This document shows positions 2,224-36,344 of a stretch of 64,000 nt of DNA, in pieces. The stretch comes from Haplodiscus bocki (Eukaryota). The notes beneath the pieces are model-generated. The model was not told the DNA's origin. It saw only the letters and a list, made by a program, of their open reading frames with translations, and made no database searches. The first letter of the stretch is position 1. Each line of letters opens with the position of its first letter. The stretch is from assembly GCA_965655095.1 (NCBI GenBank), contig OZ296657.1, positions 20,770,001 to 20,834,000 of the forward strand, in the 5' to 3' direction. The position numbers and the translations under genes are program-made.

Positions 2224-3123
2224 CGACCATCTTGAACTCAATACCTCCTCAACTGGACCTGAACAGTGATCGTTGCAGTTGAAATATTGAGTGTGTTGAG
2301 TGATGCTATGCATTTTTGTTGAATCGCTTGATGAAGTTCGTCTTTGGGTTTTCGTAATTGCAGTATAGCTGAAGTTTTTGTTTCTCATCTTTTTCTTCCA
2401 GTATCACCCATATGTTAGGTTATTCGACTCAACCATAAGTCTTTTCAGGCTTGAAGACTCCTGTTCGGGAATAAGAAGTGTGCATTAGTCAAAGGTTGCA
2501 TACGTTATCTTTTGGGACGTTTGGTTTTACGGTATTTTCTTTTGCAACTGCAAAACTTTGTTTTTCAAAGTTTTGCTTCACGGGTGCTTGGTTTTGTACC
2601 AATTTAAATCCCATAACTTGTGAATTAGGCCTCTTACGTAATGTTACGGAGAATTGGACATCCTTTTTTGACTTGCCCTTGACGTAGACAAAAAGAGTTT
2701 TTCCAGGTTCCTACAGTTTTCATACGCAGCTCTGTCAGACCAATTTGGCAATTTAGCACGTTTGGGTGTACGTAAACTCCAAAAGTTTCTTACGGAACCA
2801 TTTTGGCATGTGAATTGTTCATTTTGAGATCATTAACGGTTGTCTACTAGCAAAATCATTTTACATGCACTTTCGATGACAACCTGTTTGATAACATAAT
2901 TTTGAAGGTCAAAAGTTGGCGTTTCAGTTTCAGTGTCATGATGTTTGGCAACAACTACCACAAATTGTGCTTACAAAAAAGGCGAAGACGTTGGATCGTT
3001 GTCTTGTCATGTTGTAAGAAGTCAAGGTCATAGCTGGGGTAGCTGAGATTGTGCGAATTTGAAAAACTGCACGATGGAAGTTACATTTGTGATTTATATG
3101 TGGAGATAGAATATTTTTGATTT
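2224..3123 (+). repeat. U2 array intergenic spacer, complete (~0.9 kb; unit ~1087 bp)
   Basis: Links one U2 3' end to the next U2 +1; homologous copies at 17823-18631, 20556-20860, 23905-24449, 52780-53332, 58593-59144, 63437-63625. Confidence 0.88.
3064..3112 (+). promoter_or_regulatory. putative U2 proximal promoter (PSE-type region, about -60 to -12)
   Basis: AACTGCA..A.GGAAGTTACATTTGTGATTTATATGTGGAGATAGAAT lies at a fixed distance upstream of the native U2 +1 sites (3124, 18632, 53333, 59145; diverged before 24450); the position matches snRNA PSE/PSEB. Confidence 0.6.
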
Positions 3124-3142
3124 ATCGCTTCTCGGCCTTTTG
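3124..3142 (+). ncRNA. U2: U2 snRNA 5' end (nt 1-19); nt 6-19 form the left TSD of the Tx1 insertion
   Basis: ATCGCTTCTCGGCCTTTTG is the canonical U2 5' end. Confidence 0.9.
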
Positions 3143-3363
3143 TAGTGAACAGTTACTTCCAGGCCTAACAATTTGCTCATTGGCATTTCAACTCTGCATA
3201 TTTGCTTTTCAATTCTGCTTATTGGCTTTTATTATTGCAATGGTTGAAGATACTTCCTAGTCGATCTTATACTGATCCTAATTAACACATCTCAGCTTAC
3301 TTTGCCAAGTGATCTTATATTATCTCATCTCAGCTTACTTCGCAAAGTGACTTCTGTCCAGCG

Positions 3364-4647
3364 GTGCCCCCCTCCCCGCCTCAGCTGGTGTCAGTCCCCA
3401 AACTGGATCAGGATGCCCTAAACAACCCGAGTAGGCACAATCAAGAACAATCTACAAGTAATGATATTCATGTTGAACCTATTTTGAGCACTCCAGAAAA
3501 AAACAGATACGAAAATGCGTTAAAAACAATGCCTTTGCCCGAAAGCAGAGAAGAAGTACAGGTTCTCAAGATTCCTGTATCTCTTCGCGCTGCAGACTTT
3601 CAGTCGAGAGAAGGTTTAGATCTGGCTTTCAGAAAAGGGTGTTCTGCGATTTTGAAGCAGGCACCGATTTTTTGCCAAAATGAACTGACTTTGTAGAAAA
3701 CTTTTACTGCATTAGGAGGAAGGAACATCCATACAATAACTGTTGTTGCATCATCCAGTGCAAGACCCTATTTTGATGAAGTTAGAACAGGCATTAAGCT
3801 TCTCGGTAAAACAGTTTTCCCTTTGGGGCATAGTGCATTTATAAGTAGCAATCGGCATAATATGTATCCACGAAAAGTGAACATCAAGATTCAGAACCTC
3901 CCTTTAAGCTGCTCGGACGATGAATCAATGAAGTTAATTAGTTTTCCCCCTGAAATTGAAAATATAGATGCCACTGATCGAAGAAAAGAAAATGTTGAAG
4001 GTGTAGATTTCTACACCAGAGAAGCGAAAGTCAAAGTCGGTGTGCGCAATCAGAAACAGTTGAAAAACCTTTCTCGGTGGTCATATCACAAGAGAACCAA
4101 AAATGAACCAACCCTTCGGAACGGAATACCTGTGTCTTTTCACGCTCCCTCGTTGCATAAGTGCGAAGAGTGCAAGAAACAAACTAGGCAATTTCAGGGC
4201 CACCACAAAGACTGGTGCTTCCTGGCGAGGCGAGAAAGTTTGCAAATGGTAGCCAAAAAGACATCAACGATAAAAACTACTTCGACGCCACACCAAACTC
4301 AAATTCAAGCGGTAGAATCGCTAGAAGAATCGCAAGATATATCGCAAGATGAATCGCAAGATAGATCGCAAGATCATAACGAATCGCAAAATGAATCCCA
4401 AGAGGAATCACAACAGGAGTCGCAAGACGAGTCTCAAATTGAAGATGAATTGAAAACTTTGGCGGAAGGAAGTTTAATGACTGCTCATGCAGACAAAAAC
4501 ATAAGAAAAAATGAGATGACAAATGTTAAGAAACAAAAGTATGTAAGGCTTGAGGAACGGTGTAGACAGGCTGCAAAGAAAGAAAACGATGAAGAAGACA
4601 CACACCGTTTACCGTTGACTAACTTCCCACCATTGTCCAAAAAGTAG
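3364..4647 (+). pseudogene. Tx1-type ORF1 (RRM-like region, CCHC zinc knuckle, ESQD repeats), one stop
   Basis: KVNIKIQNLP RRM-like start, CEECKKQTRQFQGHHKDWC knuckle; the same region is uninterrupted in the copy at 21055-21750. Confidence 0.78.
4315..4440 (+). repeat. 12-bp coding minisatellite GAATCGCAAGAT (ESQD/ESQN)
   Basis: About 10 degenerate units; related array at ~11540-11670. Confidence 0.8.
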
Positions 4648-4780
4648 TGAAAGGAATAGAATACTTAACAAGCAAAGAAAAAGAACGAGTCACCTCGCCG
4701 GGAAGCGCTGTAGGAAATGCCAAAACGAAGGCGGCCAAAGCGGGAGGATCCCCCAACAAAGTGAAACCACAGAATTTGAC

Positions 4781-6990
4781 TTGTTAAGTTTGAATGTACG
4801 AGGAAAAACTTCAATTGACTGTTTCGTGGCAACCCTAGACATTATATATAGGAGACAATTCTCTCAAAACATTGTAATTCAAATGCAAGAGACTAAGCTG
4901 AATAAGCTTTCTCAAGACAATATTGACGAAATTAATTTACGGGGACTTTCGTACATTGATATACCTGCAACGGACTCAGCGGGGGATTGCTCACGTTTTG
5001 GTCCAAAAACATGATAGTTCGTCAAATTTTCACAGAAAACAAAATTATCGACATCCTGCTTCTCGACCGCGGGACTCTAATAATAGTTAAATATATGAAC
5101 CAGAAAGTTTTTGGTGAGGAGGAGTCAGTTCTCGGAAACTTTTTGAAAAATAAAAAGGCAGAAGAGACTGACATCATTCTTTCAGGAGACTCAGGCGTAT
5201 GAAAAAACCGATATCTGAAATTGAAGTAACTTTGCCCATAAGAAGTCTCAATAAAAAATCTGCACCTGGTCCTAATGGATTGACCACTCTCTTGTACCAA
5301 GGGCTTGAACAAACGCGGGCTCCAATTTTGAAACAAACTTCAATGAGGTTGAGCGGAAAAGCCAGTTGCCTGAATCCTTTGGTTTCGCAATCATCCAAGT
5401 TTTGCCCAAACAAGAAAGCGCTATTCGAGTAAAAGACTACAGCCAGTGAGTTTATTTATTACTGATCAAAAAATCCTTTCACACGTTTTTGACAATAGAT
5501 TGAAAGAAGGCCTAGATTTTAGTAAAGCTTTTGACAATGTACACAGAAATTATCTTTACAATTTACTTCAGGTGATTGGAACTCCAACAAACATTGTCAA
5601 ATGTTTCAAACCGATCGATGAAAAGACAACTGCAGTTGTTCAAGTCAATCATCATATGACACAATCAGTTGAAATTAAGCGGGGAGTCAGGCAGGGATGC
5701 CCTCTCTCAGCACTATTATTCATTCTAGCCATTGAACCAATGCTGCTTGACATTAAAAACGACCCTTATATACACACCAAGTTCGTCACCAACGTTTCAG
5801 CCTATGCTGATGATATAACTTGTTGCGTTAAAAATAGATCTTTAGAAGCACTATTTGACCGAGTAAAGTGTTCTTGCGATGCCACTCAACTATCTGTTAA
5901 AGTTGATAAAACAAAAATTCTGAGCAGAAGAAGCATGCAATATTATGAAACTCGAAAGAAAATCAAAATACTCGGTATTGAACATAAACTGAATGATCAG
6001 GCAAATAACGACCTGTTTCAGGATAAAATCTCAGAAGTTCAAAACTCGGTTGCAGCGATACCCAAAACGATAATTTCAATGCGGGCAGAAGCAATAAATT
6101 TCGAAACTTTCATTTACTCCAAGTTGATTTACGTGTTACGCCACACAAAAGTGGTAACACAGCGACTCGAAAGATTCCAAAGGTATATAACAAAAGGTAT
6201 ATGGATGGAGAAGAGAACAGACGTGGCTTCAGACATTCTTTGTCTCCCCACACCCAGCGGCGGAATTGGTCTCCCAAATATTGACCTGAAAACTTTTGCA
6301 GCCGTCATTAGTGACTGCGAAAATACATTCTTCCACTCAAATCTAGGAAAAGAAATTCTGCTGAATCAACTCTTCGGATCTGAGGAAGGGTTTCTCCATG
6401 ACCTTAAGAAATCTCTTTTGAAAAGTTTAAAATGCAAATTGATATTTATGGAGAACAAATTCTGTTAGTGGGTGACGGGAGACAATTGCAAATTGTGGAG
6501 CGTACGAAAATGAGAGATATATTTTTTTCCTCTAATTACGGAAAAAAAACGAAACGTAGAAAATCGCCTGGTTCCATCTTGCAGGATTTTCGACGTTTCT
6601 ACGCAACAACTTCTATCTTTTAAGTTCCTATGGAAGGTAACATCACTTTATCCACATGAAGAAAATCTAATGTATCGATTTCTCTACGCTTCTTGCTCAG
6701 ACAAGCCAAAAAAGAAGCAATTAAATTCAATTATGGATGACAGTTGCACTTTTTGAAAAATCCGGCAAGAAACGATAGAACATGTACTTTTCGATTGCCC
6801 AATTTTGGAAATACTCCAAAAAGAGTACAAACTAAAAAGTTGGAAAGAGAGACAGTTTTGTTGAGAAAAATTCCAAGTCAATAAAGTTTGCAACTGACGT
6901 TTTGATTGGAGCGTGGGAAAATGAAGGTGAAAAAACGATGGACTATCTTAATAGAACAATTTCCATATGGAGCCCGGCCGAACATTGGAT
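4781..6990 (+). pseudogene. Tx1/L1 ORF2 (AP endonuclease, RT, CCHC), deleted and frameshifted
   Basis: LSLNVRG, MQETK, SGD; SAPGPNGL, LDFSKAFD, RGVRQGCPLS, AYADD, GGIGLP. Confidence 0.9.
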
Positions 6991-7212
6991 GAAATCCCCC
7001 CCCCCCCCCCCCCAAAATAGATTGGGTTCGGTACAAGAGAAAGATGGAAGATGGAGAGGAGGTAAATAAGTAGGAAAATGGCATTTCTGGACAGTTCAAC
7101 CCACGTCCTTTTTAATAACATATTTAATATGAATTTATTACCGATTAGAATTTTATGCAACCAAGTAGACCAAACATCAAATGTGTAACAAAGCAATGCC
7201 GGACGGTGCGGT

Positions 7213-7273
7213 GGTCCCCGTATCCGCCGTCTTGCGTCGAATGTTGCCTTCTCCGCGGTTGGAGACGGGGACC
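7213..7273 (+). other. GC-rich hairpin in the Tx1 3' UTR
   Basis: GGTCCCCGTATCCGCC pairs with GG(T)TGGA(T/G)ACGGGGACC; a 16-bp stem with one G-U in the copies at 23122-23182 and 41575-41635. Confidence 0.75.
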
Positions 7274-7408
7274 CTAAAAATTTCGGGATCCGGGCCATGT
7301 AATGGGTGAGAATAAGATATAATGTAACTAATTTGAAGTAGTGTAACTAATGGTGCTTCTTTTCTCTTTTTAAAAAACAATGGAACCCGGGACCAAGTCG
7401 ATGATACG

Positions 7409-7698
7409 CAGGGGCTGATGCACAAACTGAGGTCTTGGGGACAAGCCAGCAACTGCAAATTCAAGGTTCTGTGGCTAAGATGGTCAGTGACTGGCAATTC
7501 CAGTCGAGCATTTGAGAATGAGGACTCAGTTGAAATTCCATATCTGGCCTCAAACCCTTGTCAAAGTTCAAACGCAGTTGCTGGGATTCAAACCTCTACC
7601 TTGACATCAGCGCCTCATGCTACAACCACTATACCATCATTGCACAAAACGTGAGGAAATCTGAATGTATATCCGAATAGCGTATGCATCAGCCCCTG
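7409..7698 (-). mobile_element. inverted-repeat-flanked cassette containing an antisense tRNA-derived SINE-like unit, inside the Tx1 3' UTR
   Basis: CAGGGGCTGATGCA (7409-7422) and TGCATCAGCCCCTG (7685-7698); minus-strand A box TGGTATAGTGG and B box GGTTTGAATCC within 7573-7643. Confidence 0.72.
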
Positions 7699-7796
7699 AC
7701 AAAAACTTTGCTTAGTATAAATATGGGTGCTTACATTTATGTTTATCGAACACAGTTAACAAATTATGAGAAATAAGGTAATTTAAATATTTGAAT

Positions 7797-7825
7797 TTCT
7801 CGGACTTTTGGCTAAGATCATGTGT
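7797..7825 (+). ncRNA. U2: U2 nt 6-34 fragment between a Tx1 3' end and a Utopia 5' end
   Basis: TTCTCGGACTTTTGGCTAAGATCATGTGT. Confidence 0.88.
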
Positions 7826-10800
7826 GCAATTTCAGAGTCGTGGCGACGTGTGGCCATGATGCTGATGATTTCGAGTTCGATCCCTACCGGAGGCGACTTT
7901 TTTTAATAATTGAATCAAAGACAGCGAATTCTATATTACCGACATTTTCTTCCCCAAAAATGTCGTCATTTATATTTGATGGATGTGCAGCAATAGTGCC
8001 GTTTCCAGTATCCTTCCCGCTGCTTTGCGCAGCTTGTGACCGCTCAATAAAAGAATCGACTTTCAAACGCGATATCTTTCGACACTCAAAGATCTGCAGG
8101 CAAAGACAACCGGGATTACCAGAAGCGGACGAACTGGTTTTCGAATGTTCCTTCTAAAATTTCACAACCACCGATCGAAGGAAAACAACTTCCCACTAAG
8201 TCTCGCATTTTGGAGACAAAGACTACAACCTGGTAAAATATCCGTGTGGGAGATGCAATCGTTTCTTTGCCACTCAGAAGGCTCTGAGCAGCCACACCCG
8301 GCAATGCAAAGAAGTAGTAGATAAGGCTGGACAGAGTCCAGCAGTTCATCCTTTGCCATGCATTGATCCAGGTCCGAGTGCTCACGATCCAGTAGGTGAG
8401 GAAGTACAATACCATGACCATGCGGTTGAACAAGCACAGACGGTAGAGGCGCAGCCTATTGCAGACAACGACGAAGACCAGAGTGAGATAACATTTGTGT
8501 CAGTGTCGTCTGTTTCCCTGGCTCCTGACGAAGATTTTTATAGACCGCCTGCCTGAGTTGACCCCAATTTTTACTGTGACCTTTCGCTGCAGAAGTTGAT
8601 ACCACCAAAAACTGCAAAGAAAATCAGGCAATCAAAACAGAACTTTCTCTCCTCGAAAATGTCGCCTCGTGACCTGCAAGCCCTCTACATAAAACAACCA
8701 AAGAAAGCCATAGACAATATACAATTTATTCCAAGCATTGACTGTAAAGTCAGGAGTGTAGACCTGCGCCATGGGCTGTTGCTGCAACTTGAAATCCAGA
8801 ATCCGCCATCCCTAAAAGAACAGTTATGGAGACCCTGTCTAGAAGGGATTGAAGAAGAACTAACAATGCCGTTTCAGGTAGAAGAAATCCAAAAAGCACT
8901 TTCCCACCCAAACTCAGCGCCCGGTCCCGATGGGTGGAAATATGAGGACCTTGCTCGTCAAACAGACTTTTCCAAACACTTCGTGGAGGGATTACACCAA
9001 ATCGCTGCCACCTCAAAAACGCCCAATTCTTGGAGGGCATACAACTCAATGATGCTGTTTAAAAAACCTGATGAATTTGTGCCAGGACAAGAGTCCGTTT
9101 TGAAAAACTTTCGCCCTATCGGACACCACGTACAAACTATTAACATCAACACTATGCAAGCGATTAAGCAAATGGTTAGAGAAGAACAAGGGAATCTCTT
9201 ACTCCCAACGAGCAGTGTTTTCACGTCGCGGGGTCCAAGAAAATACCTTATTTGTTGCTGAAGCACTGAAGCAGAAGAAGAGTACTTTTCCTAGACTTAT
9301 CTGATGCGTTCAACAGCGTAGAACATTGCCACATATACGAAGCCCTAAAACAAAGTTCTTGTCCGGAGTGGATCATCAAGCTGCTAAAATCGCTGTACAG
9401 CGGATGCACCACAGTCCCTGTGGATCAAGCTGGCTACCCACTGTCTGGACCAATCCCTGTAACGAGAGGAGTACGCCAAGGATGCCCCCTGAGTGGTCTC
9501 CTGTTTAACCTGGTTTTAGACCCGATAATCCGAAAAGTCTAAAATTCCTCAACTACATGTTCGGGTTATATGGATGATCTGGCGGTGGTTACGGACCCTT
9601 CCACGCTCCCTGGAATCCTAGAAGAGATAGTAGAACTTGCCTCTCTCCTGGGTATTCGTTTCAATCCACAGAAAAGTGGAGTCGCCAACTACGCCCCAAC
9701 ATTAAGGATAGCAGATAAAGATATCAGAGTAGTCAACGAAATGCAACCTTTGGGCACCGAAGCAATTCCCTCGAATCTCGGTGGATTGGAAACCCACTTC
9801 GCAAAGATCTACAAGTCAGCAGAACTGATCGAAATGTCCGCCCTCACACCGATGCAAAAACTACATGCTTTACGCACTTATGTCCTGCCCATGTTGATGC
9901 ATCTGTTGGAAAACTCACATTCAACTCAAAAGCAGCTCCAGAAGATAACAGAGACCTAAGGAAGACGGTGAAGCGAATATTTTATTTACCGGAAAGAGCC
10001 ACAAACACATACTTTCACCTTCACTGGAAGTACGGAGGCCCGGGGCAGCCGAATTTAGAGCTACTGAAAGTTAAACTCACTATCCAAACTTTCACACGAT
10101 CAATGAATCTGCCAGATGAGTTCGGCGACACTACGCAAACCCTCATTACCAAAGGAAAACCAATGTCAAGAAACAATTGGGAAGATCAACAATAGATCAA
10201 GAGCTGGACTGTCCCAACTAACCAATGACGTGGTGTTTGCCACAAAGAAGTTGGAGTCCTTCCTGAGGGTGCAATTGTCCTTTAACCATCATGACAACTG
10301 TGTAAGCTTGGTATTAAACAACATGTGTTACAAAGATCCTGGACCAACTATTGAAAGTTTAATTCAAAAGAAAACACTACAAAGTCTTATTAATACTCCC
10401 AGCCAAGGACCCGCATGGTCCTCGCTTAACCAAACTCCGAGTACCACCAAGCAAATCTACAGTTTTCATACCACAATGTGTGTCTGGCGCTTCGTTCATG
10501 CAGCAAGACTGAGCCTCACTTGAATTCGAGCCAACGTCGTTTGGAACCACCACAACGACCCAAGGTTTAGACGTTGCCAGGTTGCTCGTGAAACAGTAAA
10601 TCATGTTGTCAACTCGTGCTCCACTAACAGACGAGACATTATACTGCGCTACAATGCTGTAAGAGATCTGTTCGCCACTGAAGTACCCGGGACGCTGAAA
10701 GTTGCTTATGAACAAAGATTTGGCTATCTTTGACCAGACCTTGTCCTAGAAGACCCATCAACGAATTCAACCGTTATTCTACATGTCAAGGTTTCTGCTG

Positions 10801-11494
10801 AAGATATCCACATCTTCAATGATACCTCCCGATTCATAGCTGACAAATATGAACCCCTGAGGCGTTCCTATGAAATTTATGGCCACAGAGCTTCAACACA
10901 CACCCTCCAGTTTGATGCCCTTGGCAGTGTTTCTCGCGACAGCTACAACCTCATCAACCGAATCACGAACAAAAAGAATGCATAACTTGTTCTGAGGAAA
11001 ATAACCAACCTAATCACACACTGTACCCGCAACCTCACAGGGCAACATCAACTATCCTGAACTAAAAGCTGATGACGCGCTCTCTGCCAAATCCACGATT
11101 GTGCTAATAATCAATTTTTATGCCATTGTTTCATTATGCCTATTGTTTTACAATGTCAATCTATCTATTCATTTACGCAACTCGCATTCTCCAAAGGTCC
11201 ATATTATTCTTCAACATGTACCCGCCTCATTCCCACAACGAAGCCCCTGTAGCCAAGCAGCGTCATCTTTGGAACGCTCGACCTCCTGCTGGTGTTGGAC
11301 CAGATGGGCTTGGATGGAGGTGGCCCACCAGACTTATAACTGACTACAAACTTGACTTAAACTCCGTAAACATTCACCTAACCTTTACACTGCTTGTATA
11401 AACTTAGCTCTCACATTCTGTATACTAATTTTTCATCATTGTCTCAAGCAACAATTGCGCGTGTATTTTCCATTTCCTTCTAACTAAAATATTT
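7826..11494 (+). mobile_element. Utopia-like RLE element, near full length and degenerate (ORF ~7960-11070)
   Basis: N-terminal zinc fingers (CAAC..RHSKIC, FECSF, YPCGRC..ALSSHTRQC), SAPGPDGW, FRPI, GYMDD, LTPMQKLHALR, AARL, RLE region; U2 fragments on both sides. Confidence 0.9.
11281..11330 (+). other. conserved pseudoknot-type RNA element in the Utopia 3' UTR
   Basis: Crossing stems ACCTCC/GGAGGT and GATGGGC/GCCCA(T/C)C; homologs at 13500-13548 and 20205-20254. Confidence 0.62.
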
Positions 11495-11530
11495 TATATT
11501 CTCGTCAGCTTAACATCTGACATGGTAAGC
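11495..11530 (+). ncRNA. U2: U2 fragment nt ~39-74
   Basis: TTCTCGTCAGCTTAACATCTGACATGGTAAGC, then a deletion junction into Tx1 ORF1. Confidence 0.75.
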
Positions 11531-13497
11531 CGGATGCATCGGGATCGCGAGATGAATCAAAAAATGAGTCGCAAAACGAATCGCACGAGGAATCGCAAGT
11601 TGAGTCTCAAAACGAATCGCAAGATGAATCCAAGAGGAATAGCGAGATGAATCGCATAATGAAACACAAAATGAAACTGAGGTAGAAACTTCGGCTCAAG
11701 GAAGTTCAACGACCAAGCAGGCAATAACAACAATAATAAGAGACCATGAAGAACATGAAGATGAAACCGATCTTCGACTCGCAGCAAAAAATCTATGAGG
11801 TTGAACGAAAGATAATGATTCGGCAACTGGAGCGGATTAAAGAAGTCCGTGCTGATATCAAGAAGTGGAAGAGAAAGAAGTGAACAAAGATTTGAAAACT
11901 CAACAAAATGAGTCTGTAATTTCTAAAATACTGAGTGAGCGAAATCAGGCTCTTGCTGACAATAACACGATAATCTAAGAACTTTCTAGTTTTTACAAAG
12001 AACTCCATGATGCAAAAATTAGAGATGAAGGCCAAAAACAGCAGACACTGGACAGACTTGAAGAACAATCATTTAGGAGAGAAAAAGATGAGACGAATGA
12101 AAAAAAACCGATATCTACAACTGAAATCACTTAAGCCATCAGAAATCTCAAAAATCAGCCCTGGTCCTGATGGATTGCCCACTCTTTTGTAACAAGGAAT
12201 CGAAAAAAAGGGGCCCAACCTTGTCAATGTTATAGACAGCGGGAGTATTTTGCCTGAATCGCTTGGTTTCGCAATCAATGAAGTACTGCCCTAAAAAAAC
12301 GCTCTCCGTGGAAAAGACTATCGGCCGCTGAGTTTAATGAACAGATCAAAAAATCTATTGGCATTTTATAGCCAATAGATTGAGAACAAAAAGCATGGAA
12401 AAACTAATTGGCTAAGAACAAATCAGCTATTTGAGAAAACTCCAGATACATCAAGTGATTGATCACACGAAATTAGCTTGAAGAAATGAAAACTGAAACT
12501 TGAGTTATTGCTACAGACTTCAGAAGACCCTTTGATAGCGTCAACAGAAAATACCTTAATCGTTTACTGCAGGTGATTGGAATGCCGATAAACATTATCC
12601 AATGTATCAAAGCGACAAAAGAAAAGACTACTGCAGTCTTTGAAGTCAATCACCACGTGACAAAATCTGTTGATATTAGGAGTGGGGTCGGAGACGGATG
12701 GCCGCTCTCTGCACTAATATTCATTTTAGCCGTTGAACCACTGCTGTTGGACATTAAAAACGACCATTCCATAAAGACCAGTTTTGTCACCAAAGAATCA
12801 ACCTACGCTGATGACACAAGTTGTTACGTTAAAAGAAGATCTTTGGCGCCATTATTTGAAAGCGTGCAACGATTTTGTGAGGCCACTCAATTGTCTGTAA
12901 AAGTAGAAAAAACGGATATTCGTGGAAGACAGAGCATTGAATATCACACAACGCAAAGGAAATCAAAATACTCGGAATTGACCATATTCTGAACTATCTA
13001 ACGAAAAATGACAGTTTTCAACAGAAAAACTCAAGGGAGGTTCAGAAATCCGTTCCAATGATATCGAAAATTCTAATTTCAATCCGGTCAAAAGCAAAAA
13101 CTTCCGATATTTTTGTTTATTCTAAGTTGATTAACATGTTGCGGTACGCAGGAGTCAAAACATAGCGCCTCGAAAAATTCCAATGTGGTCTAACAAAAGG
13201 TATATGGACAGAGAAAAGAGCAACAGTGGATTCAGACAATTTTTGTCTCCCCACGCACAACGGCGGAATTGGTCTTCCAAACATTATTCTGAAAACTTAT
13301 GCAGCTGTCACTAGTGTCTGAAAAAGGGTTTTTCAGCAATTTTAGGAAATCTCTTTTGAACATTTTGAAAAATACAATTGAAATAGAATTGAGTAGAAGC
13401 AAAATTCTGTTGGTGGGAGAGGGGAGGCAACTTCGATTTTGGACACCACAAAAACCAAGGAGATATATGTTTCTTCTACTGGCTGACAAGGAACGCT
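11531..13497 (+). mobile_element. Tx1-clade fragment, second diverged subfamily (ORF1 ESQ repeats fused to ORF2 RT)
   Basis: SPGPDGL, KDYRP, TYADD; clearly diverged from the 39158-40651 copy. Confidence 0.82.
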
Positions 13498-13713
13498 AGA
13501 CCTCCAGTCGGTATTGGACCAGATGGGCTTGGATAGAGGTGGCCCATCAGACTTAAAAATGACTATTGAACATGACTTGAGTCTGAAAACATTCTCTTAA
13601 CTTTCAGACTGTTTGCATAAACTTAATTGTTACATTCAGTATAATAATTTTTCATCATTGTTTCAAGTGACAATTACGCGTATAATTTATTCTATTTTAA
13701 ATTAAATATTTAT
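13498..13713 (+). mobile_element. Utopia-like 3' UTR fragment
   Basis: Homologous to 11280-11494 and ends at U2 nt 39. Confidence 0.8.
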
Positions 13714-15060: not shown

Positions 15061-15728
15061 ATTGAGCCACAGAATAATGGATAAACTTAATGGATCTGAA
15101 AAAGGGTTTTTCAGTGAATTTAGGAAATCTCTTTTGAAAGGTTTGGAAACTACACTTGAAAGAGAAATGAGTGAAACCAAATTCTGTTAGCAGGTGAGGG
15201 TAGGCAATTTCAGATTTTGGACACAAAAATGAAGGAGATAAACCTTTCTCCGACTAACTGAAAAAAAGAAAAGGAGGGTAGAAAACCACCTAGCTCCATT
15301 TTGCAAGAGATTCTCAACGTTTCAATGAATCAACTTCTATTGTTCAACAGGTTCCTATGGAAGACTAGATCACTTTATTCACATGAAAGGAATGTAATGT
15401 ATCGAGTGCTATATGCCTCTTGGTCTCACACGCCAACAATGAAGCAGCTAAAACTAATAGAAGACGACACCTGCACTTTCTGTAAAGTTGATCAAGAAAC
15501 AGAACAAGTAACTTTTAATGCCAAAATTTGAAATATCTCCTTGAAAATTACTAAATAAACAGTTGGAAAAATATTTTCGTGGACCGGAACGCTATATCAA
15601 AACCATTTCAAGATGGAGCCGGGAAAATACCTAATTTGGATGATACTATGACCAGAAATAAAAAACTTGGATTTGGTACAAGAGAGAAGGCAGAGGACTA
15701 AAAAATAGGCTTTCTGGAGCATTTGAAA
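15061..15728 (+). mobile_element. Tx1 3' fragment (zinc-finger region fused by deletion to the terminal ATTTGAAA)
   Basis: DDTCTFCK..ETE; the end abuts U2 nt 6. Confidence 0.78.
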
Positions 15729-15760
15729 TTCTAGGATTTCTGGCTAAAATCATGTGTAGT
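15729..15760 (+). ncRNA. U2: U2 nt 6-37 fragment including the branch-point recognition GTAGT
   Basis: TTCTAGGATTTCTGGCTAAAATCATGTGTAGT. Confidence 0.8.
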
Positions 15761-17822
15761 TGACGAGCAAGAAGTCATGAAGAGACAGACATTCACGAAG
15801 TCAAGACGATACCATTGCCGACAATAACTGGAGAAAGTTCACCTGACGAACTTGATGACACAGCAGCCCTTTGAAACGTCTGGCAACCGCTTTCACGGTT
15901 GTACGGCTATCATGCTTTTCCTGCCACTCCCAATATTGTGTGATGCTTGTCAGATCACAATCGGAGAATCCTCTCCTAAAAGAGACGTGAATCAGGAAGG
16001 GAGGGAGACAACGTGCTCCGGGCAGTGTAGATAAGAAGGATGGGCAGTTCAATAGTGTCTACTGCCTCTGGCTCATGATAGAAGGAAGGCAACCGACCAC
16101 CAAGGCCTGCACTTTTGTGACCCTCATTAACAACGGGAACATACGATTGTACGAACTGCAACCACTCGTTTGGGATACAGAAGGCACTGAGCAGTCACAC
16201 GAGACAAAGTACACAGCAGAGCAGTGTCGTGACTACAGTGATAAAAACAACACTGGTAGCTGCAGTGTGTCCCCCTCTACCCGATGAACCCCTCCGCCTA
16301 CACCACCGCTGCCTCCAGCGTTGCCTTCCACCAAGGAGTATATGACAGGGACTTCGGTAGGAGTTGCTGAAGAACTAGACCATATCATCTCACTGAGCAA
16401 TGTGTCCCGTACATATCAGGCAGAAATCGACAAAGAAAGATAAAACCCGCCATTTTACGAGACTTATTAAGTGCAGGAACGCATAATCGAATGGCAAGAA
16501 GCAGAATGCAATGAAGGCATGAATACTCCACTTTCAACGAGGGAAAAGAAGGTCTAGTTACAAGAATAGTGGGCTGAGACAGCAGCAACCTCGGAGGACT
16601 GCTGCGGAACTGCAAAGGTTATACAGCACAGATATGAAGAAAGTATGAACAAAATTCAATTCTTCCTTGAGATACTGTGTGAGGTACACCCAAATGATTT
16701 GCATTGTGGCTTTTTCCTACAGTTAGGGGCAGAAGAAAAAACACCCACTGAGAGGCAAAGACTTTGCCTGCCGTGCGGAAAGGGGACAATGATTTGTCTG
16801 CTGTTTCAGATCGTATGAAGTGGAGCAGGCACTACAAAATAAAATTTAGCTTCAGGGACAGATCAATGGACCTACGACACAGTAAGACCGACACATTCTG
16901 CCAAGAAGTTTGTGGAGTGTCTGCACGCGATGGGACTCACGAGATTAACACCTGACTGCTGGAAGAAATACAACAGCATGCTGCAATTAAAGAAACCGAG
17001 TTGAGTATGAAGTAGTCCAAGAGAAGGAGTTAAGATGTTTCAGGCCAATGGCTTTTTCAGATGTCTGCAATAAATTATTTGCCTCCATCCTGTGCAGGTG
17101 ACGCAACAGTTGGTTGAAGACTAACAAGAGCGTTGGCTTCTCTCAGCGGGCTGTGTTTGGCAGGCACGGCGTTGCAGAAAACGCACTGGCAGTTAGCAAT
17201 GCCCTTAGAAAGAAGAAGACAGTGGTCTACCTGGATCTAAGTGACGCCTTCAACAGTGTGGAGCAATGTCTGATTTTTGAAGCACTACGAAAATGCAACT
17301 GTTCATGATGGATCATTGGTCTCATCAAATCGATGTACTCCGGATGCAAGACGACGCCAGTCAGTGTGAAAGGAGAAGAATTCTCGGGCCCTGTTCCTGT
17401 TAGCCGTGGAGTGAAGCAAGGATGGCCCCTTAGTGGACTGTTGTTGAACCTCGTGCTGGACCCTTTGTTGAAAGAAGCCACATCAGATGTGTCAACGTGC
17501 CTTGGCTACATGGATGACTTGGCCATCATCATAGAGGACGAGAACAAAGTGGAAAAAGTTTTCTCAAAAACAGTGAATCTGGCAAAGAGCCCGGGTTTCA
17601 GCTTCAATGCAAAGAACTGCGGGGTGGCAAGATTTCCACTCCTCCTCCTCCTTGACGTTAAGCATTGACGGGGCAACCATTCCAGTGGTCAACGATGACA
17701 AGGACTGAAAGAACACTGTAACAGAAGCATTCCCATCAACAGTCGAAGGACTAGTATCCTGCTTCGAAATGGCCCTTCGCATCGCCGAACCAAGAGAGTA
17801 CTCTGAGTTAACATCAATACAC
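15761..17822 (+). mobile_element. Utopia-like element, 5' two-thirds, degenerate
   Basis: FHGCTAIMLF.LP..CDAC, QRAVFGRHGV, YLDLSDAFNSV, GVKQG.PLS, GYMDD. Confidence 0.85.
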
Positions 17823-18662: not shown

Positions 18663-20404
18663 AAAAAAAATGAATAAGATCAGCAATGTTCACCAGAGGT
18701 TCCTGGATGGTGTCCATGGAATTTGTGGCACCCAAAAAGTGCCCTCTTCTTGGAAAACATACAATACTTTACTCCTATTCAAAAAGCCTAAAGACTACAA
18801 CCCCGGTGAAGAAGAAATACTGAAAAAATTCCGCCCTATTGCTCCATCGAATGTGGGGTACAAAGTTTTTGCGTCCATGCTAGGAACTCGCCTGATCAAA
18901 TGGTTGCAGCTCAACAATGGGGTACAATGGTCCCAAAGAGCCATATTCAACCACAATGGTGTACGGGACAACACTTTAGTTAATGCAGCAATACAAACGA
19001 ATCAGAAAGTTGTATTCTTTGATTTATCTGATGCATTCAATAGTGTCAATCATGAGTTATTGATTGAAGGCCTCAGCAAAATAGGTGCCCAAATTGGATT
19101 GTCGAAACTATTCGAGAGTTATATCTTCAATGCTCTACTACTCCTGTTTCTATGCAAAAGCAACAACTCTCCAGCCCAATCTTCATCAACAGCAGAGTCA
19201 AGCAAGGGTACCCAATGTCATCAACACTTTTTAATTTTTATATCAGCCCCATACTAGCGATGGTACATCAACTTGGCGCTACGTGTCTTGGCTATATGGA
19301 CGACCTAGCGGTAATCATCCCCAAGAATCTTGACGTGCAGTTCATACTCGATGAAGTCACACGGGTAGCTGATGCTCTAAAAATGTCATTCAACATCAAG
19401 AAATGCGGCATCATCAATCAAGAAAAACCAACAACCTTGAAGTCAGAAACGATTCCTCAAATAACATCCAGATGTTCCTACCAATATCTAGGTGCAAGTG
19501 CGGCCGACAAGAAGTTAGAAGGACTCATGGAATCGTTTGAAAAGTTCAAAAATGACTGCCAAACTGTTCTTAACAGCGCCCTTACTCCAATGCAAAAACT
19601 GAATTCTTTGAGAACCCACCTCCTCCCTAAACTCTACCACCTGGTTGAGAACACTTCTCCAAAACAGTCTACACTTCGGAAGATAAATTCTTTCCTTCGG
19701 AAGATAACTAAAACGCTGTGCTTCCTACCTGAAAAAGCGACAAACTCTTATGTTCACCTAAGTAGACTCCACGGTGGTCCTGGAATTCCTGATATGGTCT
19801 GGTTAACACGCACCAAAATCTTGGTCGCTTTTTTCCAAACAATGAACAATGACCAGAACTTTACGAGCGCCTTCTGTGACCTCGTCCATTGTGAAAACTT
19901 GGTTGATCAGATACATATCCGGCATGATTGTCCACCTTTAAAGAAAAAAAGTTACAGGCCATATCATAGGAACTCAACAAACTTTCTGAGAATAGCTTTG
20001 AGCTCATAACAAAAATTCAAACACTCATGATATGTTTTTGTTGTTCCTTCTATTTTTACTCCCCCTTAATTTTCTATTTTTTTTTCACAGTTTGCTTCGA
20101 GACATGTGTACGTACACTTATATTACTTTTAGTCAAAAGGTCCACACACAAGCAACAAGTTCTGATCGTAACCAAGCAAAAATGTAATTCTGTGGTTTAA
20201 ACGTCCTCCTGCTGGAATTGGACCTGATGGGAATTGGATGGAGGTGTCCCATCAACAAACTATTCTTAATCTCTTTTAACTAGAACATTCTTTGACTCTA
20301 TGCTTTTTACTAGTTGTAAATACATCATTTATTAATTTATAACCAACAATATGAAGCTCTTTTACCCGTATATTTTGTTTTGTTATACCTAATTTAAATA
20401 TTCC
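18663..20404 (+). mobile_element. 5'-truncated Utopia-like element (RLE part deleted), flanked by both halves of one U2 gene
   Basis: FRPIA, FFDLSDAFNSV, VKQG.PMS, GYMDD, LTPMQKL, HGGPGIPD; U2 nt 1-31 on the left and nt 38+ on the right, no TSD. Confidence 0.88.
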
Positions 20405-20555
20405 ATCTGTTCTTGTCAGCTTAATATCTGGCATGGTAGGCACCGCCTACCTCCAATATTAAACTGATTTTTGATCCACGGTCTAGGCAAAAAAGCTTGC
20501 TTTAGCCGGACCACGGATTGTCCTGGTCTTACACTCCCACCGGGTACGGTCCAAT
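20405..20555 (+). ncRNA. U2: U2 snRNA 3' part (nt 38-~188)
   Basis: Best-preserved copy; spacer follows to ~20860. Confidence 0.93.
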
Positions 20556-23253
20556 CGACCATTTTGGATTCAATATCTCCTCAACTGGACCTGCACAGTG
20601 GTCCTTGAATTTGGAATATTGAGTGTGTTGAGTGATGCTAAGCATTTTTGTTGAATTGTTTGATGAAGTTCGTTTTTGGGTTTTCGTGTTTGCAGTATAG
20701 CTGATTATTTTGTTTCTCATCTTTTTCTTCCAGTATCGCCCATATTCGACTCAACCAGAAGTCTTTTTCAGGCTTGAGGACTCCTCTTGGCGAATAAGAA
20801 GTGTGCATTAGTCAAAGGTTGCATACGTTGTCTTTTGCGACGTTTGCTTTTACGGTATTTTCAACGGTTTATCGTTGAGTAACTTTCCACCATGGTCCAA
20901 AAGTTGCTCATTGGCATTTCAATTCTGCTTATTTGCTTTTCAATTCTGCTTAATGGATTTTATTATTGCAATGGTTGAAGATACTTCCTAGTCGATCTTA
21001 TATTGATCTTAATTAACTCATCTCAGGTTACTTTGCCAAAACGCGTTAAAAACAATGCCTTTGCCCGAAAGCAGAGAAGAAGTACAGGTTCTTAGGATTC
21101 CTGTACCTCTTCGCGCTGCAGATTTTCAGTCAAGAGAAGATTTAGATTTGGCTTTCAGAAAAGGGTGTTCTCCGATTTTGAAGCGGGCACCGAATTTTTG
21201 CCAAAATGAAGTGACTTTGTCAAAAACTTTTAATGCATTAGGAGGAAGGAACATTCATACAATAACTGTTGTTGCATCGTCCGATGCAAGACCCTATTTT
21301 GATGAAATTAGAACAAGAGGCATTAAGCTTCTCGGTAAAATAGTTTTCCCTTTGGGGCATAGTGCATTTATAAGTAGCAATCGGCATAATATATATCCAC
21401 GAAAAGTGAACATCAAAATTCAGAACCTCCCCATCATCTGCTCGGACGATGAAGCAATGAAGTTATTTAGTTTTCCACCTGAAATTGAAAATATAGATGA
21501 AATTGATCGAAGAAAAGAAAATGTTGAAGGTGTAGATTTCTACATCAGAGAAGCGCAAGTCAAAGTCGGTGTGCGCAATGAGAAACAGTTGAAAAACCTT
21601 ACTCTGTGGTCATATGACAAGAGAACCAAAAATGAACCAACCCTTTTGAACGGAAAACCTGTGTCTTTTCACGCTCCGTCGTTGCATAAGTGCGAAGAGT
21701 ACAAGAAAACTAGGCAATTTCAGGGCCACCACAAAAACTGGTGCTTCCTACAAGATCTTTCGAAGCACTATTTGACAGAATAAAGTGTTCTTGCGATGCC
21801 ACTCAATTATCTGTTAAAGTTGATAAAACAAAAATTCTGAGCAGAAGAAGCATGCAATATTATGAAACTCGAAAGAAAATCAAAATACTCGGTATTGAAC
21901 AAAAATTGAATGATCAGGCAAATAAGGACCTCTTTCAGGAAAAAATCTCAGAAGTTCAAAACTCGGTTGCAGCGATATCCAAAAGGATAATTTCAATGCG
22001 GGCAAAAGCAATAAATTTCGAAACTTTCATTTACTCCAAGTTGATTTACGTGTTACGCCACACAAAAGTGGTAACACAGCGATTCGAAAGATTCCAAAGG
22101 TATATAACAAAAGGTATATGGATGGAGAAGAGAACAGCAGTGGCTTCAGACATTCTGTCTCCCCACACACAGCGGCGGAATTGGTCTCCCAAAAATTGAC
22201 CTGAAAACTTTTGCAGCCGTCATTAGTGACTGGAAAAATACATTCTTCAACTCAAATCTAGGAAAAGAAATTCTGCTGAATCAACTCTTCGGATCTGAGG
22301 AAGGGTTTCTCCATGACCTTAAGAAATCTTTTTGAAAAGTTTGAAATGAAAATTGATATCTAGGGAGAACAAATTCTGTTGATGGGTGACGGGAGACAAT
22401 TGCAAAATGTGGAGCGTACGAAAACGAAAGAGATTTATCTTTTTCCTCTAATTACGGAAAAAAAACGAAAAGTAGAAAACCGCCTGGCTCCATCTTGCAG
22501 GATTTTCGACGTTCCTGCACAACAACTTCTATCTTTTAAAAAGTTCCTTTGGTAGGCTTCTTCAATGTATCCACATGAAGAGAATCTAATGTATCGAGTT
22601 CTCTAGACTTCTTGCTCAGACAAGCCAAAAATGAAGCAATTAAATTTAATTCAAGATGATAACTGTACTTTTTGTAAACGTGTGCAAGAAACGACAGAAC
22701 ATATACTTTTCGATTGCCAAATTTTGGATAATCTCCGCAAAGAAAACAAACTAAAACATTGGAAAAACATTTTTGTTGACAAAAACTCCATGTCAAAACA
22801 TTTTGCCACGAACGTTTTGATTGGAGCGTGGAAAAACGAAAGTGAAAAAACGATGGACTATCTTAATAAAAACATATCCAGATGGAGCCGGGCAAACACC
22901 AAAATTGGATGAAATCTACACAGAAAAAATAATTGGTTTGGTACAAGAGAAAAATGGAAGATGGAAAGGAAGTATAAAGGTAGGGAATAGGTATTTCTGG
23001 AGAGTTCAACCCCGTTCTTTTTAATAGCATATTTAATATATATTTAAAACCGATTAGAATTTCATGCAACCAAGTTGACGGAAAATCAATTGTGAAACCA
23101 AGTAATGCCGGATGGTGCGGTGGTCCCCGTATCCGCCGTCTTGCGTCGAATGCTGCCTTCTCCGCGGGTGGATACGGGGACCCTAAAAAACTTTTCGGGA
23201 CCCGGGCCTTGTAATGGGTGACTAATGTAACGTGATGTAATGTGAAAGATTGG

Positions 23254-23365
23254 AACTAATGGTGATATATTGCAACTAATGGTGAAATATTGCAACTAAT
23301 GGTGAAAGATAGCAACTAATGGTGAAATATTGCAACTAATGGTGAAATATTGCAACTAATGGTGC
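23254..23365 (+). repeat. 20-bp tandem repeat AACTAATGGTGAAATATTGC (~5.5 units)
   Basis: Direct reading; same array at ~41707-41818; only about 2 units at ~7326-7355. Confidence 0.9.
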
Positions 23366-23438
23366 TTTTCGTTTTGTTTTTTTCTTTCTTTTTTTTATCA
23401 AAATAAATAATGGCTCCGGGAACCAAGTGGAAGAGACG

Positions 23439-23807
23439 CAGGGGCTGATGATCAAACTCAGGTCTTGGGGACGAGCCAGCAACTACAATTTCAAGGTTCT
23501 GGACACTGTGTCTAAGATGGACACTGACTGGCGATTCCAGTCGAGCATTTGAGAAACAGGACTCAGTTGGAATTCCATATCTGGCCTCAAACACCTGTCT
23601 CGAACTTCGTCTACAGAGCCACCCGCCTCATGCAATGCAATCACCACCGTGCAACAGATCTTCCACCTTTCAAAGATTAGACGCCGTTGCTGGGATTCGA
23701 ACCCCCTACCTTGAAATCGGAGACTCAGGCGTTGACCATTATACCAACATTTCATAAAAACGTAGAAAGCTGAATGTAACTCGTAATGGTTTATGCATCA
23801 GCCCCTG
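23439..23807 (-). mobile_element. IR-flanked antisense tRNA-derived cassette (copy 2)
   Basis: CAGGGGCTGATG / CATCAGCCCCTG ends; tRNA-like head 23682-23753 with TGGTATAATGG and GGTTCGAATCC. Confidence 0.75.
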
Positions 23808-23894
23808 ACAAAACCTTTGCATAATTTATGGGTGCTTAAAAGTTTATTGACAAATTATGGAACAAAAAACTCAAGTTAATTTAAATATTCGAAA

Positions 23895-23907
23895 TTCTCG
23901 ACCTTTT
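23895..23907 (+). ncRNA. U2: U2 nt 6-18 remnant
   Basis: TTCTCGACCTTTT, then joined through a T-run to spacer DNA. Confidence 0.65.
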
Positions 23908-24477: not shown

Positions 24478-27400
24478 GCACCCTTTCAAATTGAACTACA
24501 CCCTCGAGTGCATTGTAACGAAGCTTATTCCGATGATTTCAAGCCACTCCGATGAAAATAGATCTACTGAACCCGCAGGGGTTAGATATGATGACAGACT
24601 CGCACTGATACCTTTTCATACAGTTTCGCTCGTTCTTTGCGAACCCTGACAGTTTTTATTTAAAGAGGGACTTGGAATACTACGGAAAATTCAGAGGAAT
24701 CCCCCGAACTCTACCATCGATGATGCCAAGTTCGAGTGCAGATATTGTCCGCATTTTTCCGACGGCAGAAAGCCCGCCACAACACACCAAGGAACACGCG
24801 TTGGCAAAAGAAGTTACACCTTCATTACATATCCGGGTCACCAGTACAACCAAGTTTTGTGATGTGGCTGCAAGTGTCCCCATTGCAGATTCAGAAGCTG
24901 TGGAAGATATGAATGCAGTGACCAATGTTGCTCTTTCTGGTAACACCATTGACACGTTGACAGACACCCTTTCGTGCCTCAACAATCACGCCAGAAGAAC
25001 CCATTGTTATGACAGAACAAGCTCCCCCTGAACAGTACCCCATATGACGTGTTAACGAGTTCAGAGCACGATCCAACCCCGAAGAACATATGCTACTTTG
25101 CGATCACAAAAAACATCACTCCTAGAAGATAACACCGACAGTATGGCCTTTAAGAACACGCCAATGCCAACCTTGACATAAATGCATGATTGCAAGAACT
25201 CGTCCCTGTCAAACCCAAATAAACGAAACGCATGCTGAGAAGGGGTAACCTGGAGACTTTCAAATCTCTACTCGAAGCGCATGAGACAAGCTAGAATGAA
25301 AAACAAAATTACTCCTGAGATCGAGTACAAAGTCCATCGTACCGAGCATTTGAATCAAATGACAAAAATGTTACGAGAGAAGTTAGCCCCATGGACTTTG
25401 GGGCACCCTTGCTTGGAAGGTCTGGACGCCTCTCAACCCCGTTTATAAAACAAGAGTGAAACAGATTTTATAACACACTAACTCAGCTGCCGGGCCAGAT
25501 GGATGCACATACAAAGAGTTTGCCGACATACGCGAGTTCCCCAAAAAAGTTTGTATAAGGACTGAATCAAATCGCAATAAGCCGCATCACACATGACGAC
25601 TGGCACCACTATAATAGCAAAATGCTTTTCGAGAAACCTTATGATTACAAGAACGACCGAAATTCTACACTACAGTGTTTCAAACCTATCATACTTTCAA
25701 ATGTCAGCTACCAGCTAATCACTTCGATACTGATAATTGCCATAACGGCCAAAATTCTACTCTTAAGTGTTTCAGACATATCACACTTTCAAATGTCAGC
25801 TACCAGCTAATCACTTCGATACTGATAATTGCCATAACGGCCAAAATTCTACTCTTAAGTGTTTCAGACATATCACACTTTCAAATGTCAGCTACCAGCT
25901 AATCACTTCGATACTGATAATTGCCATAACGGCCAAAATTCTACTCTTAAGTGTTTCAGACATATCACACTTTCAAATGTCAGCTACCAGCTCATCACTT
26001 CGATACTGGGCAGAAGCATGAGTAACTGGTAGAAAACCAACAATGGCATTTCATTTGGTCAACGGGCTGCCTATTAGAGACGTGGATGTAAAGAAATAAC
26101 AGCGACTGCTTTGGAAGCCCTTAGACAGGAAACGGTAGTTTACTTAGACTTTAGCGACACTATCAATAGTGTAGAAAATGACTTAATTTTGGAAAACCTG
26201 AACCAGTCCAAGTGCCCAAGTTGAATTATGAAAGTGAAAGAGTCATTTTACAGGGAGTCTGCAACAATCCCAACTAATATGGGTTAAGAGCAACTCTGTG
26301 ACCAATTTGAAGTCAGAGATGGCGCACCACAAGGATGCCCGCTCAGTGAAATCCATTTAACCTAGGACTCAAACGCCATCAATCAATGATTAAGCCTTTC
26401 CCCGAGTAACCGAAGGATGCCTATACAAGTTCATGGGCACAAAAGTGTTCACAGCCACCTTGGGAATGAAATTGTGTTTTATGGAGGCCTGGACTATAGC
26501 CGAATGCATCGAAGTTTCTGACCTTAAGCCAATGCAAAAGCTTCATCTATTAACATCGAAGGTAGTGCCCATGTTGTACCACTTGCTAGAAAACACATGC
26601 CAAGCAAGTTGATATCCGCAGAATCAACAAATCATCATAAAAATGACAAAACGCCTGTTACTTTCCTGAAGGTGCACGAATGCACGCGTTCGTTCACATA
26701 CTGTAAGGTGGCCCTGGAATTCCTGACCCAATCTTGACTGCAGTTCAGATGGTTATTCGGTCTCTAACAAGAACAATGAATCTGGGCGACTAATTGGGTC
26801 AAATACCAAGAAAACGGATACTCATTGAAAAGGCAGAGGAAGAATTCATCCAAACTATCAACCAGCGTTCAAGACATGGATTGTCCGAGTTCGGCATAGA
26901 TGTGCAAATGACAAAGATCAGACTAGATTACACAATGGCCCACATCCACTCACTTGAACGAAGAGGTCCTTATATTGGATGGGCGAAGAATGGGATGTTA
27001 TATAAAGACCCAGGACCGACATCGAGTAGTGATTCAAAACCGCAGCCTGGCAGTTCTAAAAGCGTGCACCAGCTAAAGCTGATTTTGGCAGATCCTGATA
27101 TTCAACACAATGACAACTAGAACGAAGACAACAAATTGTGTGATGTGAGAGTTTCTTTCAGCTCGAGGGACACGAGGAATCCGTGCTAGGGAAGCAAGGA
27201 AACTGTCAGCCACGTCATCAACAACTGCTACTCTTCCAAACGTGCAAGAAGCCATCCGACGCCACAAAAAGGTGCACGGTTTTTTCATTAAGGCCATACC
27301 GAGTGATTTCACAGTGGGGAAGATCAGAGTTTCGGCAAATCACAACCCGACATCGTGGTACAAGTCGAACAAGCCCGAAAAATTTTTATCATCGACGTCA

Positions 27401-27660: not shown

Positions 27661-27929
27661 GAAGAATCAGCACTGCTGCAGACTTTGAGTACGTCCGGAC
27701 AGTGTGGCTGAGTGGACAGGTTGGTATTTTTACCCAAGCATTTGAGAATAAACACTGTCGGGTAACGCCTCAGATTTAACAAAATAGGGGGTCGCTCGGT
27801 TGTAATGCAACCCCTAAGGTGAGCCTCGACGTTTTTTATTAGCTTCATTATCTTCACTAAATTGGTAATCTTCGTATTGTTGATTTCACAGCGATTTTAA
27901 CTAAATTATTACGGTCGTTTTCCGATTTG

Positions 27930-31700: not shown

Positions 31701-31709
31701 CAAACTCGC

Positions 31710-36292: not shown

Positions 36293-36344
36293 CGACCATT
36301 TTGAACTCAATATCTCCTCAACTTGACCTGAATAGCGATATCGT

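Follow-up and report, generated by a model that had tools for sequence, protein, structure and literature searches.

Could a long interspersed nuclear element (LINE) parasitise the U2 small nuclear RNA (snRNA) gene at a position of its own, and take its transcripts from the promoter of the gene it has split? The question is raised by a stretch of 64,000 nucleotides (nt) from Haplodiscus bocki (GenBank assembly GCA_965655095.1, contig OZ296657.1, positions 20,770,001 to 20,834,000, forward strand; hereafter the window), a decayed tandem array of U2 genes in which a decayed 4.65-kb L1-like element, copy A1 (3143-7796), stands between U2 nt 1-19 and U2 nt 6-34. Taking A1 together with its relatives at other loci, we think it probable that they form a LINE family that prefers U2 without being confined to it, and whose U2-resident copies would act as masters read from the U2 promoter. 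The family is about 5.9 kb long, with an open reading frame (ORF) 1 without known domain and an ORF2 carrying an apurinic-type endonuclease (APE), a reverse transcriptase (RT) and a zinc finger; it has no poly(A) tail and lies in the U2 orientation.

U2 is numbered here from the A of ATCGC, which corresponds to position 1 of the Rfam model in intact genes. A1 follows U2 nt 19 at 3124-3142/3143 (ATCGCTTCTCGGCCTTTTG/TAGTGAAC; a slash marks a junction or nick), U2 resumes with nt 6 at 7796/7797 (..ATATTTGAAT/TTCTCGGACTTTTGGCTAAGATCATGTG), and each side carries the 14-mer of U2 nt 6-19 (3129-3142 and 7797-7810), the two copies differing by one mismatch. Both junctions thus bear out the sequence-only reading of this DNA, which had given the element a 14-bp duplication of nt 6-19. 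On the + strand, as is everything described for A1, the left flank (U2 nt 1-19, 3124-3142) adjoins an intact promoter-side U2 spacer upstream (2228-3123), and the right flank (nt 6-34, 7797-7825) is followed directly, at 7826, by a Utopia-like element. Between them lie a 5' untranslated region (UTR) reaching from the junction to the first ORF1 match (3143-3378), with a 21-nt tandem repeat at 3179-3230; a frameshifted ORF1 remnant (3379-4769) corresponding to amino acids (aa) 17-479 of intact ORF1, with 73-81% identity by tblastn to the ORF1 at locus L007 and no Pfam domain found in ORF1; an ORF2 remnant with several frameshifts (4763-6979), delimited by comparison with an intact relative; and a 3' UTR (6980-7796) that ends in ..GGTAATTTAAATATTTGAAT without poly(A). 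The ORF2 remnant consists of the APE amino-terminus (4763-5190, aa 2-144) and the RT and zinc-finger region (5172-6979, aa 438-1082), an internal deletion of about 900 bp having removed aa ~145-437. With its frameshifts and this deletion A1 is dead, an old member in a decaying part of the U2 array.

The junction is not peculiar to A1. The U2 nt 6-19 pattern occurs nine times in the window with at most two mismatches, where 0.79 are expected, and the element 3' end fused to TTCT occurs four times against an expectation of 0.54, a count of four being reached in 0 of 100 shuffles. Besides A1, the 3' junction (..GAAA/TTCT) was found four more times, in a more diverged form at 15729. The recurrence at 7797, 15729, 23895, 43855 and 60271 that had been reported from the sequence is therefore confirmed as far as the junction goes, but the one at 23895 lies in spacer and the sequence before 60271 is family-like in its last ~19 nt only.

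Ten independent loci were obtained by protein search of the public assembly ENA ERZ26859043 (L008 and L009 being one locus), whose U2 promoter region matches that of the window and which thus comes from the same or a sister species. Five of the ten lie at the same U2 site. Both ORFs are intact in L006 (5' junction after nt 16, 3' junction at 14241), in L007 (nt 1-18/element, 3' junction at 14174, then the complete U2 remainder) and in L010 (3' junction at 9436, with a second fragment at 14666); they are near-intact in L011 (nt 1-18, 3' junction at 10310), and in L249 (nt 1-18, 3' junction at 10313) ORF1 is frameshifted and ORF2 shortened. Every copy with both ORFs intact (three of three) is thus U2-resident. 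A relative with 55% aa identity and an intact ORF2 of 1081 aa, L003 of assembly ERZ25074608, ends in ..ATATTTGAAA/TTCTCGGCC at 12912. Together with 7797, 15729, 43855 and 60271 of the window, this gives 11 3' junctions at U2 nt 6, and the 3' flank of all U2-resident copies is TTCTCGGCC. Where both junctions are present (A1, L006, L007, L011, L249) the duplications measure 11-14 bp, and the 5' junctions vary among resident copies (nt 16, 18, 18 plus a T, and 19). The claim that at least two diverged lineages share the junction also stood, since a subfamily of ~64% aa identity carries it in the window and the 55% relative carries it in the second assembly. When JGI metagenomes and GTDB genomes were scanned for exact matches to the 19-nt 3' terminus, about 240 AT-rich chance hits came up, none with a U2 flank.

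Copies outside U2 tell what the duplication is and what the elements may carry with them. At L002, L004, L005 and L008, clean 13-bp duplications of non-U2 sequence follow directly after ..TTTGAAA, and at L008 there are uninterrupted paralogous sites nearby; since off-target copies duplicate non-U2 sequence, the U2 duplication is a real target-site duplication and not a U2 mimic borne by the element. Their starts are ATCGCTTCTCGGCG/TCAGTTG in L002, CGGCC/TCAGTTG in L005 and GCCTTC/TGAACAG in L004. Copy A2 of the window (20863-23894, + strand, with internal deletions), which sits in the U2 spacer at unit positions 503/523 and not in U2, begins ..TTTATCG/TTGAGTAAC, its U2 part being ATCG, and a copy nested inside a Utopia-like 5' end at L010 begins TCGGCCTT/TCAGAAC. 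The U2 part of these off-target starts always ends at nt 13-19, which is where resident copies join U2, and the first element bases after the leader match those of the resident relative (L002 and L005 compared with L006: ATCGCTTCTCGGCCTT/CAGTTGG). In the DNA tree the resident L006 (terminal branch 0.0015) groups with the off-target L008, L002 and L005 with a support of 99/100. At its other end A2 is followed by U2 nt 6-18 (TTCTCGACCTTTT, 23895-23907, + strand), after which the spacer resumes at once; because these bases are missing from the empty spacer they must have arrived with the element, as 3' read-through sequence, and this 13-base tail suggests that some template RNAs extend past the element 3' end into U2. 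The simplest reading of these starts is that RNAs of resident copies begin at U2 +1 and that stray insertions are full-length or slightly 5'-truncated copies of such RNAs. The earlier suggestion that the U2 promoter could drive the element with a U2 leader thereby gains support, since off-target copies begin with U2 5' bases, although that support is indirect.

The U2 heads could also have been acquired by template switching of the RT onto U2 snRNA or, in a weaker variant, the leader could by now be inherited within the 5' UTR. U2 snRNA is plentiful, the U1 and U2 heads of Tx1-11_Crp and SINEU were put down to template switching by Kojima 2015 (PMC4494074), and the 5' UTR of the intact resident copy at L007 shows that U2-like sequence can lie within the element itself: it holds some five 26-nt units in tandem (L007:8285-8408), with a core one to four mismatches away from U2 nt 4-19. 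Template switching would, however, be expected to leave arbitrary end points in a 190-nt RNA, whereas those observed always fall at nt 13-19; the end point coincides with the U2 join of the matching resident subfamily and is followed by the same first element bases (L002 and L005 against L006), and the leader-bearing copies are those closest to the resident master in the tree. We therefore regard this origin as unlikely, if the best surviving of the alternatives, and prefer transcription from the U2 promoter. The 26-nt units of L007 may be U2 leaders stacked through repeated re-entry. Weaker traces of U2-like units are present in the L249 5' UTR; as a general 5' UTR feature the leader repeats were rejected, being clear in L007 only, weak in L249 and not above shuffled controls in the others.

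Whether a preference for U2 exists at all depends on how much the nicked sequence itself explains. The nick contexts are CGC/TTCT in U2, CGC/TCCT at L002, TGC/TTCT at L004, TGC/TTCA at L008 and CTA/TTCT at L005. The 1086-bp U2 unit has a single YGCTTCW (nt 3-9), and TTCT has five sites on the forward strand of the unit, of which the one at nt 6 received 11 of 11 within-gene events and the other four none. A plain dispersed L1-like LINE whose nicking weakly favours (Y)GC/TTCW, and whose excess in U2 reflects a retention bias of arrays in which insertions are tolerated and amplified, could account for the five of ten protein-sampled loci outside U2 and for a common motif of only ~7 nt, and U2 arrays are crowded with other elements here too. 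We consider this still less likely than template switching. A 7-nt motif should turn up roughly every 4 kb on each strand, which makes a few U2 genes a minute share of the sites, yet half of the sample lies there; every fully intact copy is at one U2 position, the other four forward TTCT sites are unused, and the site is kept across lineages 45% apart in protein. Since half of the sample and every intact copy are in U2, the 7-nt motif alone must be insufficient and a further contribution is needed, possible sources being an endonuclease with a longer footprint, RNA pairing, or a combination of the two. The sequences point to a strong preference of the family for U2 which is not exclusive. The word 'specific', which had been used of the family, has to be given up in view of the five off-target loci and the spacer copy A2; many non-U2 insertions, which had been named as a result that would speak against the claim, do in part exist, but the strong U2 preference stays.

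The U2 units around L007, L010 and L011 are 99.7-99.9% identical to each other, while the elements inside them differ mutually by about 9-11% and have different 5' UTRs and 5' junction positions; the DNA tree of the copies is star-like, with terminal branches of 2-8%. That all U2 junctions descend from one ancestral insertion spread by unequal crossing-over or segmental duplication, and so carry no targeting information, might be argued from the young segmental duplications in the window (97% and 99.5%) and from the concerted evolution of U2 arrays, but this is extremely improbable given such element divergence inside near-identical units, which rules out the array duplication raised against the earlier claim, given the differing 5' junctions (nt 16, 18, 18 plus T, 19) and the unrelated 5' UTRs, the same 3' junction in the 55% and ~64% aa lineages, and off-target copies whose clean duplications show that the family transposes. 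Judged by this divergence, the U2 junctions are independent hits, the product of repeated targeting by an active family.

From these observations a life cycle can be proposed. According to the junctions, it is the bottom strand that is nicked first, between U2 nt 5 and 6 (top strand CGC/TTCT), and a second nick falls ~13 nt further downstream; the element 3' end (..TTTGAAA) is joined to nt 6 by reverse transcription that starts at the first nick, and the outcome of the staggered nicks is a duplication of nt 6 to 16-19. U2-resident copies still have nt 1-18 and the complete U2 promoter immediately in front of them. They would be transcribed from that promoter into RNAs starting at U2 +1 (ATCGC), some of which would run into the downstream U2 remainder, and U2 sequence at both RNA ends would guide priming and 5' joining into other U2 genes. 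Where this guidance fails, the element would land at look-alike (Y)GC/TTCW sites, making 13-bp duplications and carrying the U2 leader along, such that U2 arrays would host the intact masters and the dispersed copies would be their dead-end progeny. It is conceivable, though we stop a little short of favouring it, that a LINE lineage has here handed its transcription to an RNA polymerase II (Pol II) snRNA promoter, with a U2-headed, non-polyadenylated RNA that homes by both ends and heads that stack with each escape and re-entry, that this is a general route to snRNA-headed retroposons such as SINEU and the Tx1-Mar heads, and that it represents a third, independently evolved parasitism of U2.

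Several points weigh against this interpretation. The total sample of 17 copies, drawn via protein hits, is small and is no genome-wide census; five of the ten loci, and A2 besides, lie outside U2; and the nick motif, as far as it can be recognised, spans only ~7 nt. The leader is seen in only four off-target copies and one nested copy, and a few extra bases precede ATCG in L002 and A2. In L002 there are 13 bases before the leader, which include an inverted piece of the target (CAACAGG). We read the extra bases as target-derived filler (the inverted CAACAGG in L002, a duplicated ACGGT..TTT in A2), but they could alternatively stem from a transcript start upstream of +1. Transcription from the U2 promoter is, moreover, inferred from DNA copies only.

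The setting in which A1 decays is itself informative. The array unit of ~1.09 kb (1086 bp) comprises the 190-nt gene and a spacer, and the spacer pieces of the window are 84-95% identical to the intact L007 unit. Rfam recognises U2 3' parts only in the window, at 59-108 bits, compared with 172 bits for intact U2 genes at related loci. At L007:14169-14360 and L011:10305-10496 the last 5 bases of the element together with U2 nt 6-190 still score 160-163 bits as full-length U2, so each resident copy leaves a nearly complete, promoterless U2 behind. Young segmental duplications are present inside the decayed array (48724-52029 against 54943-58226, 97.4%; 52780-54054 against 58593-59866, 99.5%). 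The run index lists four DNA runs, all of one study, and no RNA run; contigs of these DNA runs, aligned on 3000-7900 in fragmented pieces that do not resolve the flanks, cover U2 and spacer much more deeply than the element. On 3121-7823, U2 nt ~32 is linked in run contigs to the sequence immediately preceding nt 1 across 1-3 or ~34 intervening letters, which suggests that the initial ~33 nt of U2 are repeated in tandem somewhere in the genome.

All RT-bearing insertions of the window are on the + strand, that is, in the U2 orientation, and this includes the remaining family copies. A fragment of the diverged subfamily (11531-13489), which has ~64% aa and 74% nt identity to the main family by comparison with it, breaks off at 13489 and gives way there to the final 222 bp of a Utopia-like 3' UTR; we first took 11531-13712 for a 60%-related sister family ending at nt 38, the Keno site, and this was withdrawn in view of the break and the Utopia-like 3' UTR behind it. 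A 3' part of the same subfamily (15092-15728) ends in ..GCATTTGAAA, is 73% identical in nt to the main family and 80% to 13317-13489, and is followed, as read from the junction sequence, by U2 nt 6-37 (15729-15765). Copy A3 (38451-43854) is 5'-truncated, starting from ORF2 aa ~114, retains an RT ORF of 497 aa at 39158-40651 and runs into U2 nt 6-29 (43855-43878) at a junction that could likewise be read. The A3 3' UTR harbours, at ~42203-43450, a nested Utopia-like RT fragment of ~1.25 kb that shares 89% aa identity with the L007 element. Finally, a family-like 3' terminus (TTAATTTGAATATCAGAAA, 60252-60270; 14/19 nt match to the family) closes an otherwise unclassified sequence and is joined to U2 nt 6-31 (60271-60296, junction sequence). 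The candidacy of 59167-60270 as a short family member was rejected, the first ~430 bp being Utopia-like RT, the remainder unclassified and the terminal ~19 nt alone family-like.

In regards to classification, the intact ORF2 of L007 (L007:10001-13264, 1087 aa) contains, according to Pfam, Exo_endo_phos_2 and Exo_endo_phos at 24-232, RVT_1 at 516-747 and zf-RVT at 961-1027, and its best PDB match is human L1 ORF2p (1e-65), with R2 at 1e-24. By this order of APE, RT and zf-RVT the family belongs to the L1 superfamily. Strongly preferential insertion, which is common in the clade of Tx1, Keno, Kibi, Koshi, Mutsu and Dewa (the Tx1 clade), is found in the family as well (11 junctions at one U2 position). 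In a tree of 27 ORF2s, which holds no labelled Tx1 or Keno rows and whose deep forks are poorly separated, the family and the L003 type fall in a well-supported clade with invertebrate elements, apart from the vertebrate L1-like rows and from the group that holds a Danio 'pol-like protein' (BAC82621.1). The latter is a zebrafish reference from the group that described Keno and is not tied to any family name. Of the label 'Tx1/L1' given from the sequence, the L1 half is upheld by the domains and the L1 ORF2p match; Tx1 membership is plausible but is not established by the tree. A second, unrelated APE-type LINE at L008:14616-19229 (- strand), with an ORF2 of 1081 aa that is 31% identical to that of the family, is not U2-associated at its locus.

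Among known systems, the closest comparison is with Keno, which passages of PMC4494074, PMC4640811 and PMC6136364 that refer to Kojima & Fujiwara 2004 describe as a Tx1-clade, APE-type element specific to U2 snRNA genes. Keno and Utopia share one U2 site, with the 3' flank TCTGTTCTT, 37 nt into U2 (PMC6136364, PMC4640811), and in the literature searched they were the only U2-targeting retrotransposons as of 2015, none having been found later. Like the family, Keno is an APE-type LINE that occupies U2 genes and points the same way as U2; its 3' junction is precise, it comes in multiple lineages and it lacks poly(A). Unlike Keno, whose 3' flank is TCTGTTCTTATCAG, the family has its flank TTCTCGGCC at nt 6, 32 nt upstream, with a U2 leader of only 18 nt and a duplication of ~13 bp; as had been claimed, it is thus set apart from Keno by its site. 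With a third U2 lineage at a site of its own, the 190-nt U2 gene would be partitioned among parasites as ribosomal DNA (rDNA) is among R1, R2 and others.

Utopia (PMC4640811) shares U2 arrays with the family, and Utopia-like elements hold the nt 29-31/38-39 site in the same units. It is of the restriction-like endonuclease (RLE) type, without APE and at another site, whereas the family has APE, and RT identity between the family and the Utopia-like elements is 22-25%. The latter lie at 1-2074, 7826-11498, 18663-20405, 24478-34674, 44000-48700 and 60297-63283 of the window, and elsewhere at L006:4654-7220 and L007:17155-21608. They carry an RT without APE and amino-terminal zinc fingers, have R2 proteins as their best solved relatives, and form several lineages that are 40-60% identical mutually. 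Their 5' junctions come after nt 29-31, and at the 3' junction ..AAATATT(T/C)CA is followed directly by TCTGTTC. In a U2 gene at L007:16032-16231, nt 30 and nt 38 are separated by just 16 bp of inserted sequence (TAATTTAAATATTCCA), which resembles a Utopia-like insertion with extreme 5' truncation. Another RT element, of a third kind (34741-36195, within 34675-36296 of the window), splits U2 between nt ~91 and ~104, around the Sm site, with ~13 nt of U2 on both sides.

The crocodilian Tx1 elements of (TC)n, (TTC)n and (TTTC)n microsatellites, and Kibi and Koshi (PMC4494074), have pyrimidine-rich targets that resemble the TTCT/TTCW of the family. Unlike them, the family has no microsatellite insertion, and the likeness is a lead only.

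For R2 and R1 of rDNA, the proposed logic is the same as here: the elements lack their own promoter, are transcribed together with their host gene and are helped in precise reinsertion by RNA ends taken from the target. Such ends sharpen the reinsertion of rDNA elements according to the account in PMC4494074 of Eickbush 2000 and Fujimoto 2004. Unlike in R2 and R1, the host promoter of the family would be of the Pol II snRNA type, 18 nt upstream, and not Pol I, and off-target leakage appears to be much higher. The natural intact copies at L006, L007 and L010 make both the endonuclease specificity and the role of the RNA ends testable without reconstruction, and there is a practical side, site-specific LINEs being possible templates for targeted gene insertion.

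The crocodilian Tx1-11_Crp and SINEU (PMC4494074) are, like the family, retroposons with U2 5' sequence at their 5' end and signs of repeated 5' addition, which in the family are the 26-nt units of L007. In their case template switching was held responsible for the heads, and the target is a Mariner transposon (PMC4494074). In contrast to these, the family has resident masters directly behind the U2 start, which would be a simpler source of the head, and its U2-headed stray copies could thus offer a concrete and testable origin for snRNA-headed short interspersed nuclear elements and LINEs.

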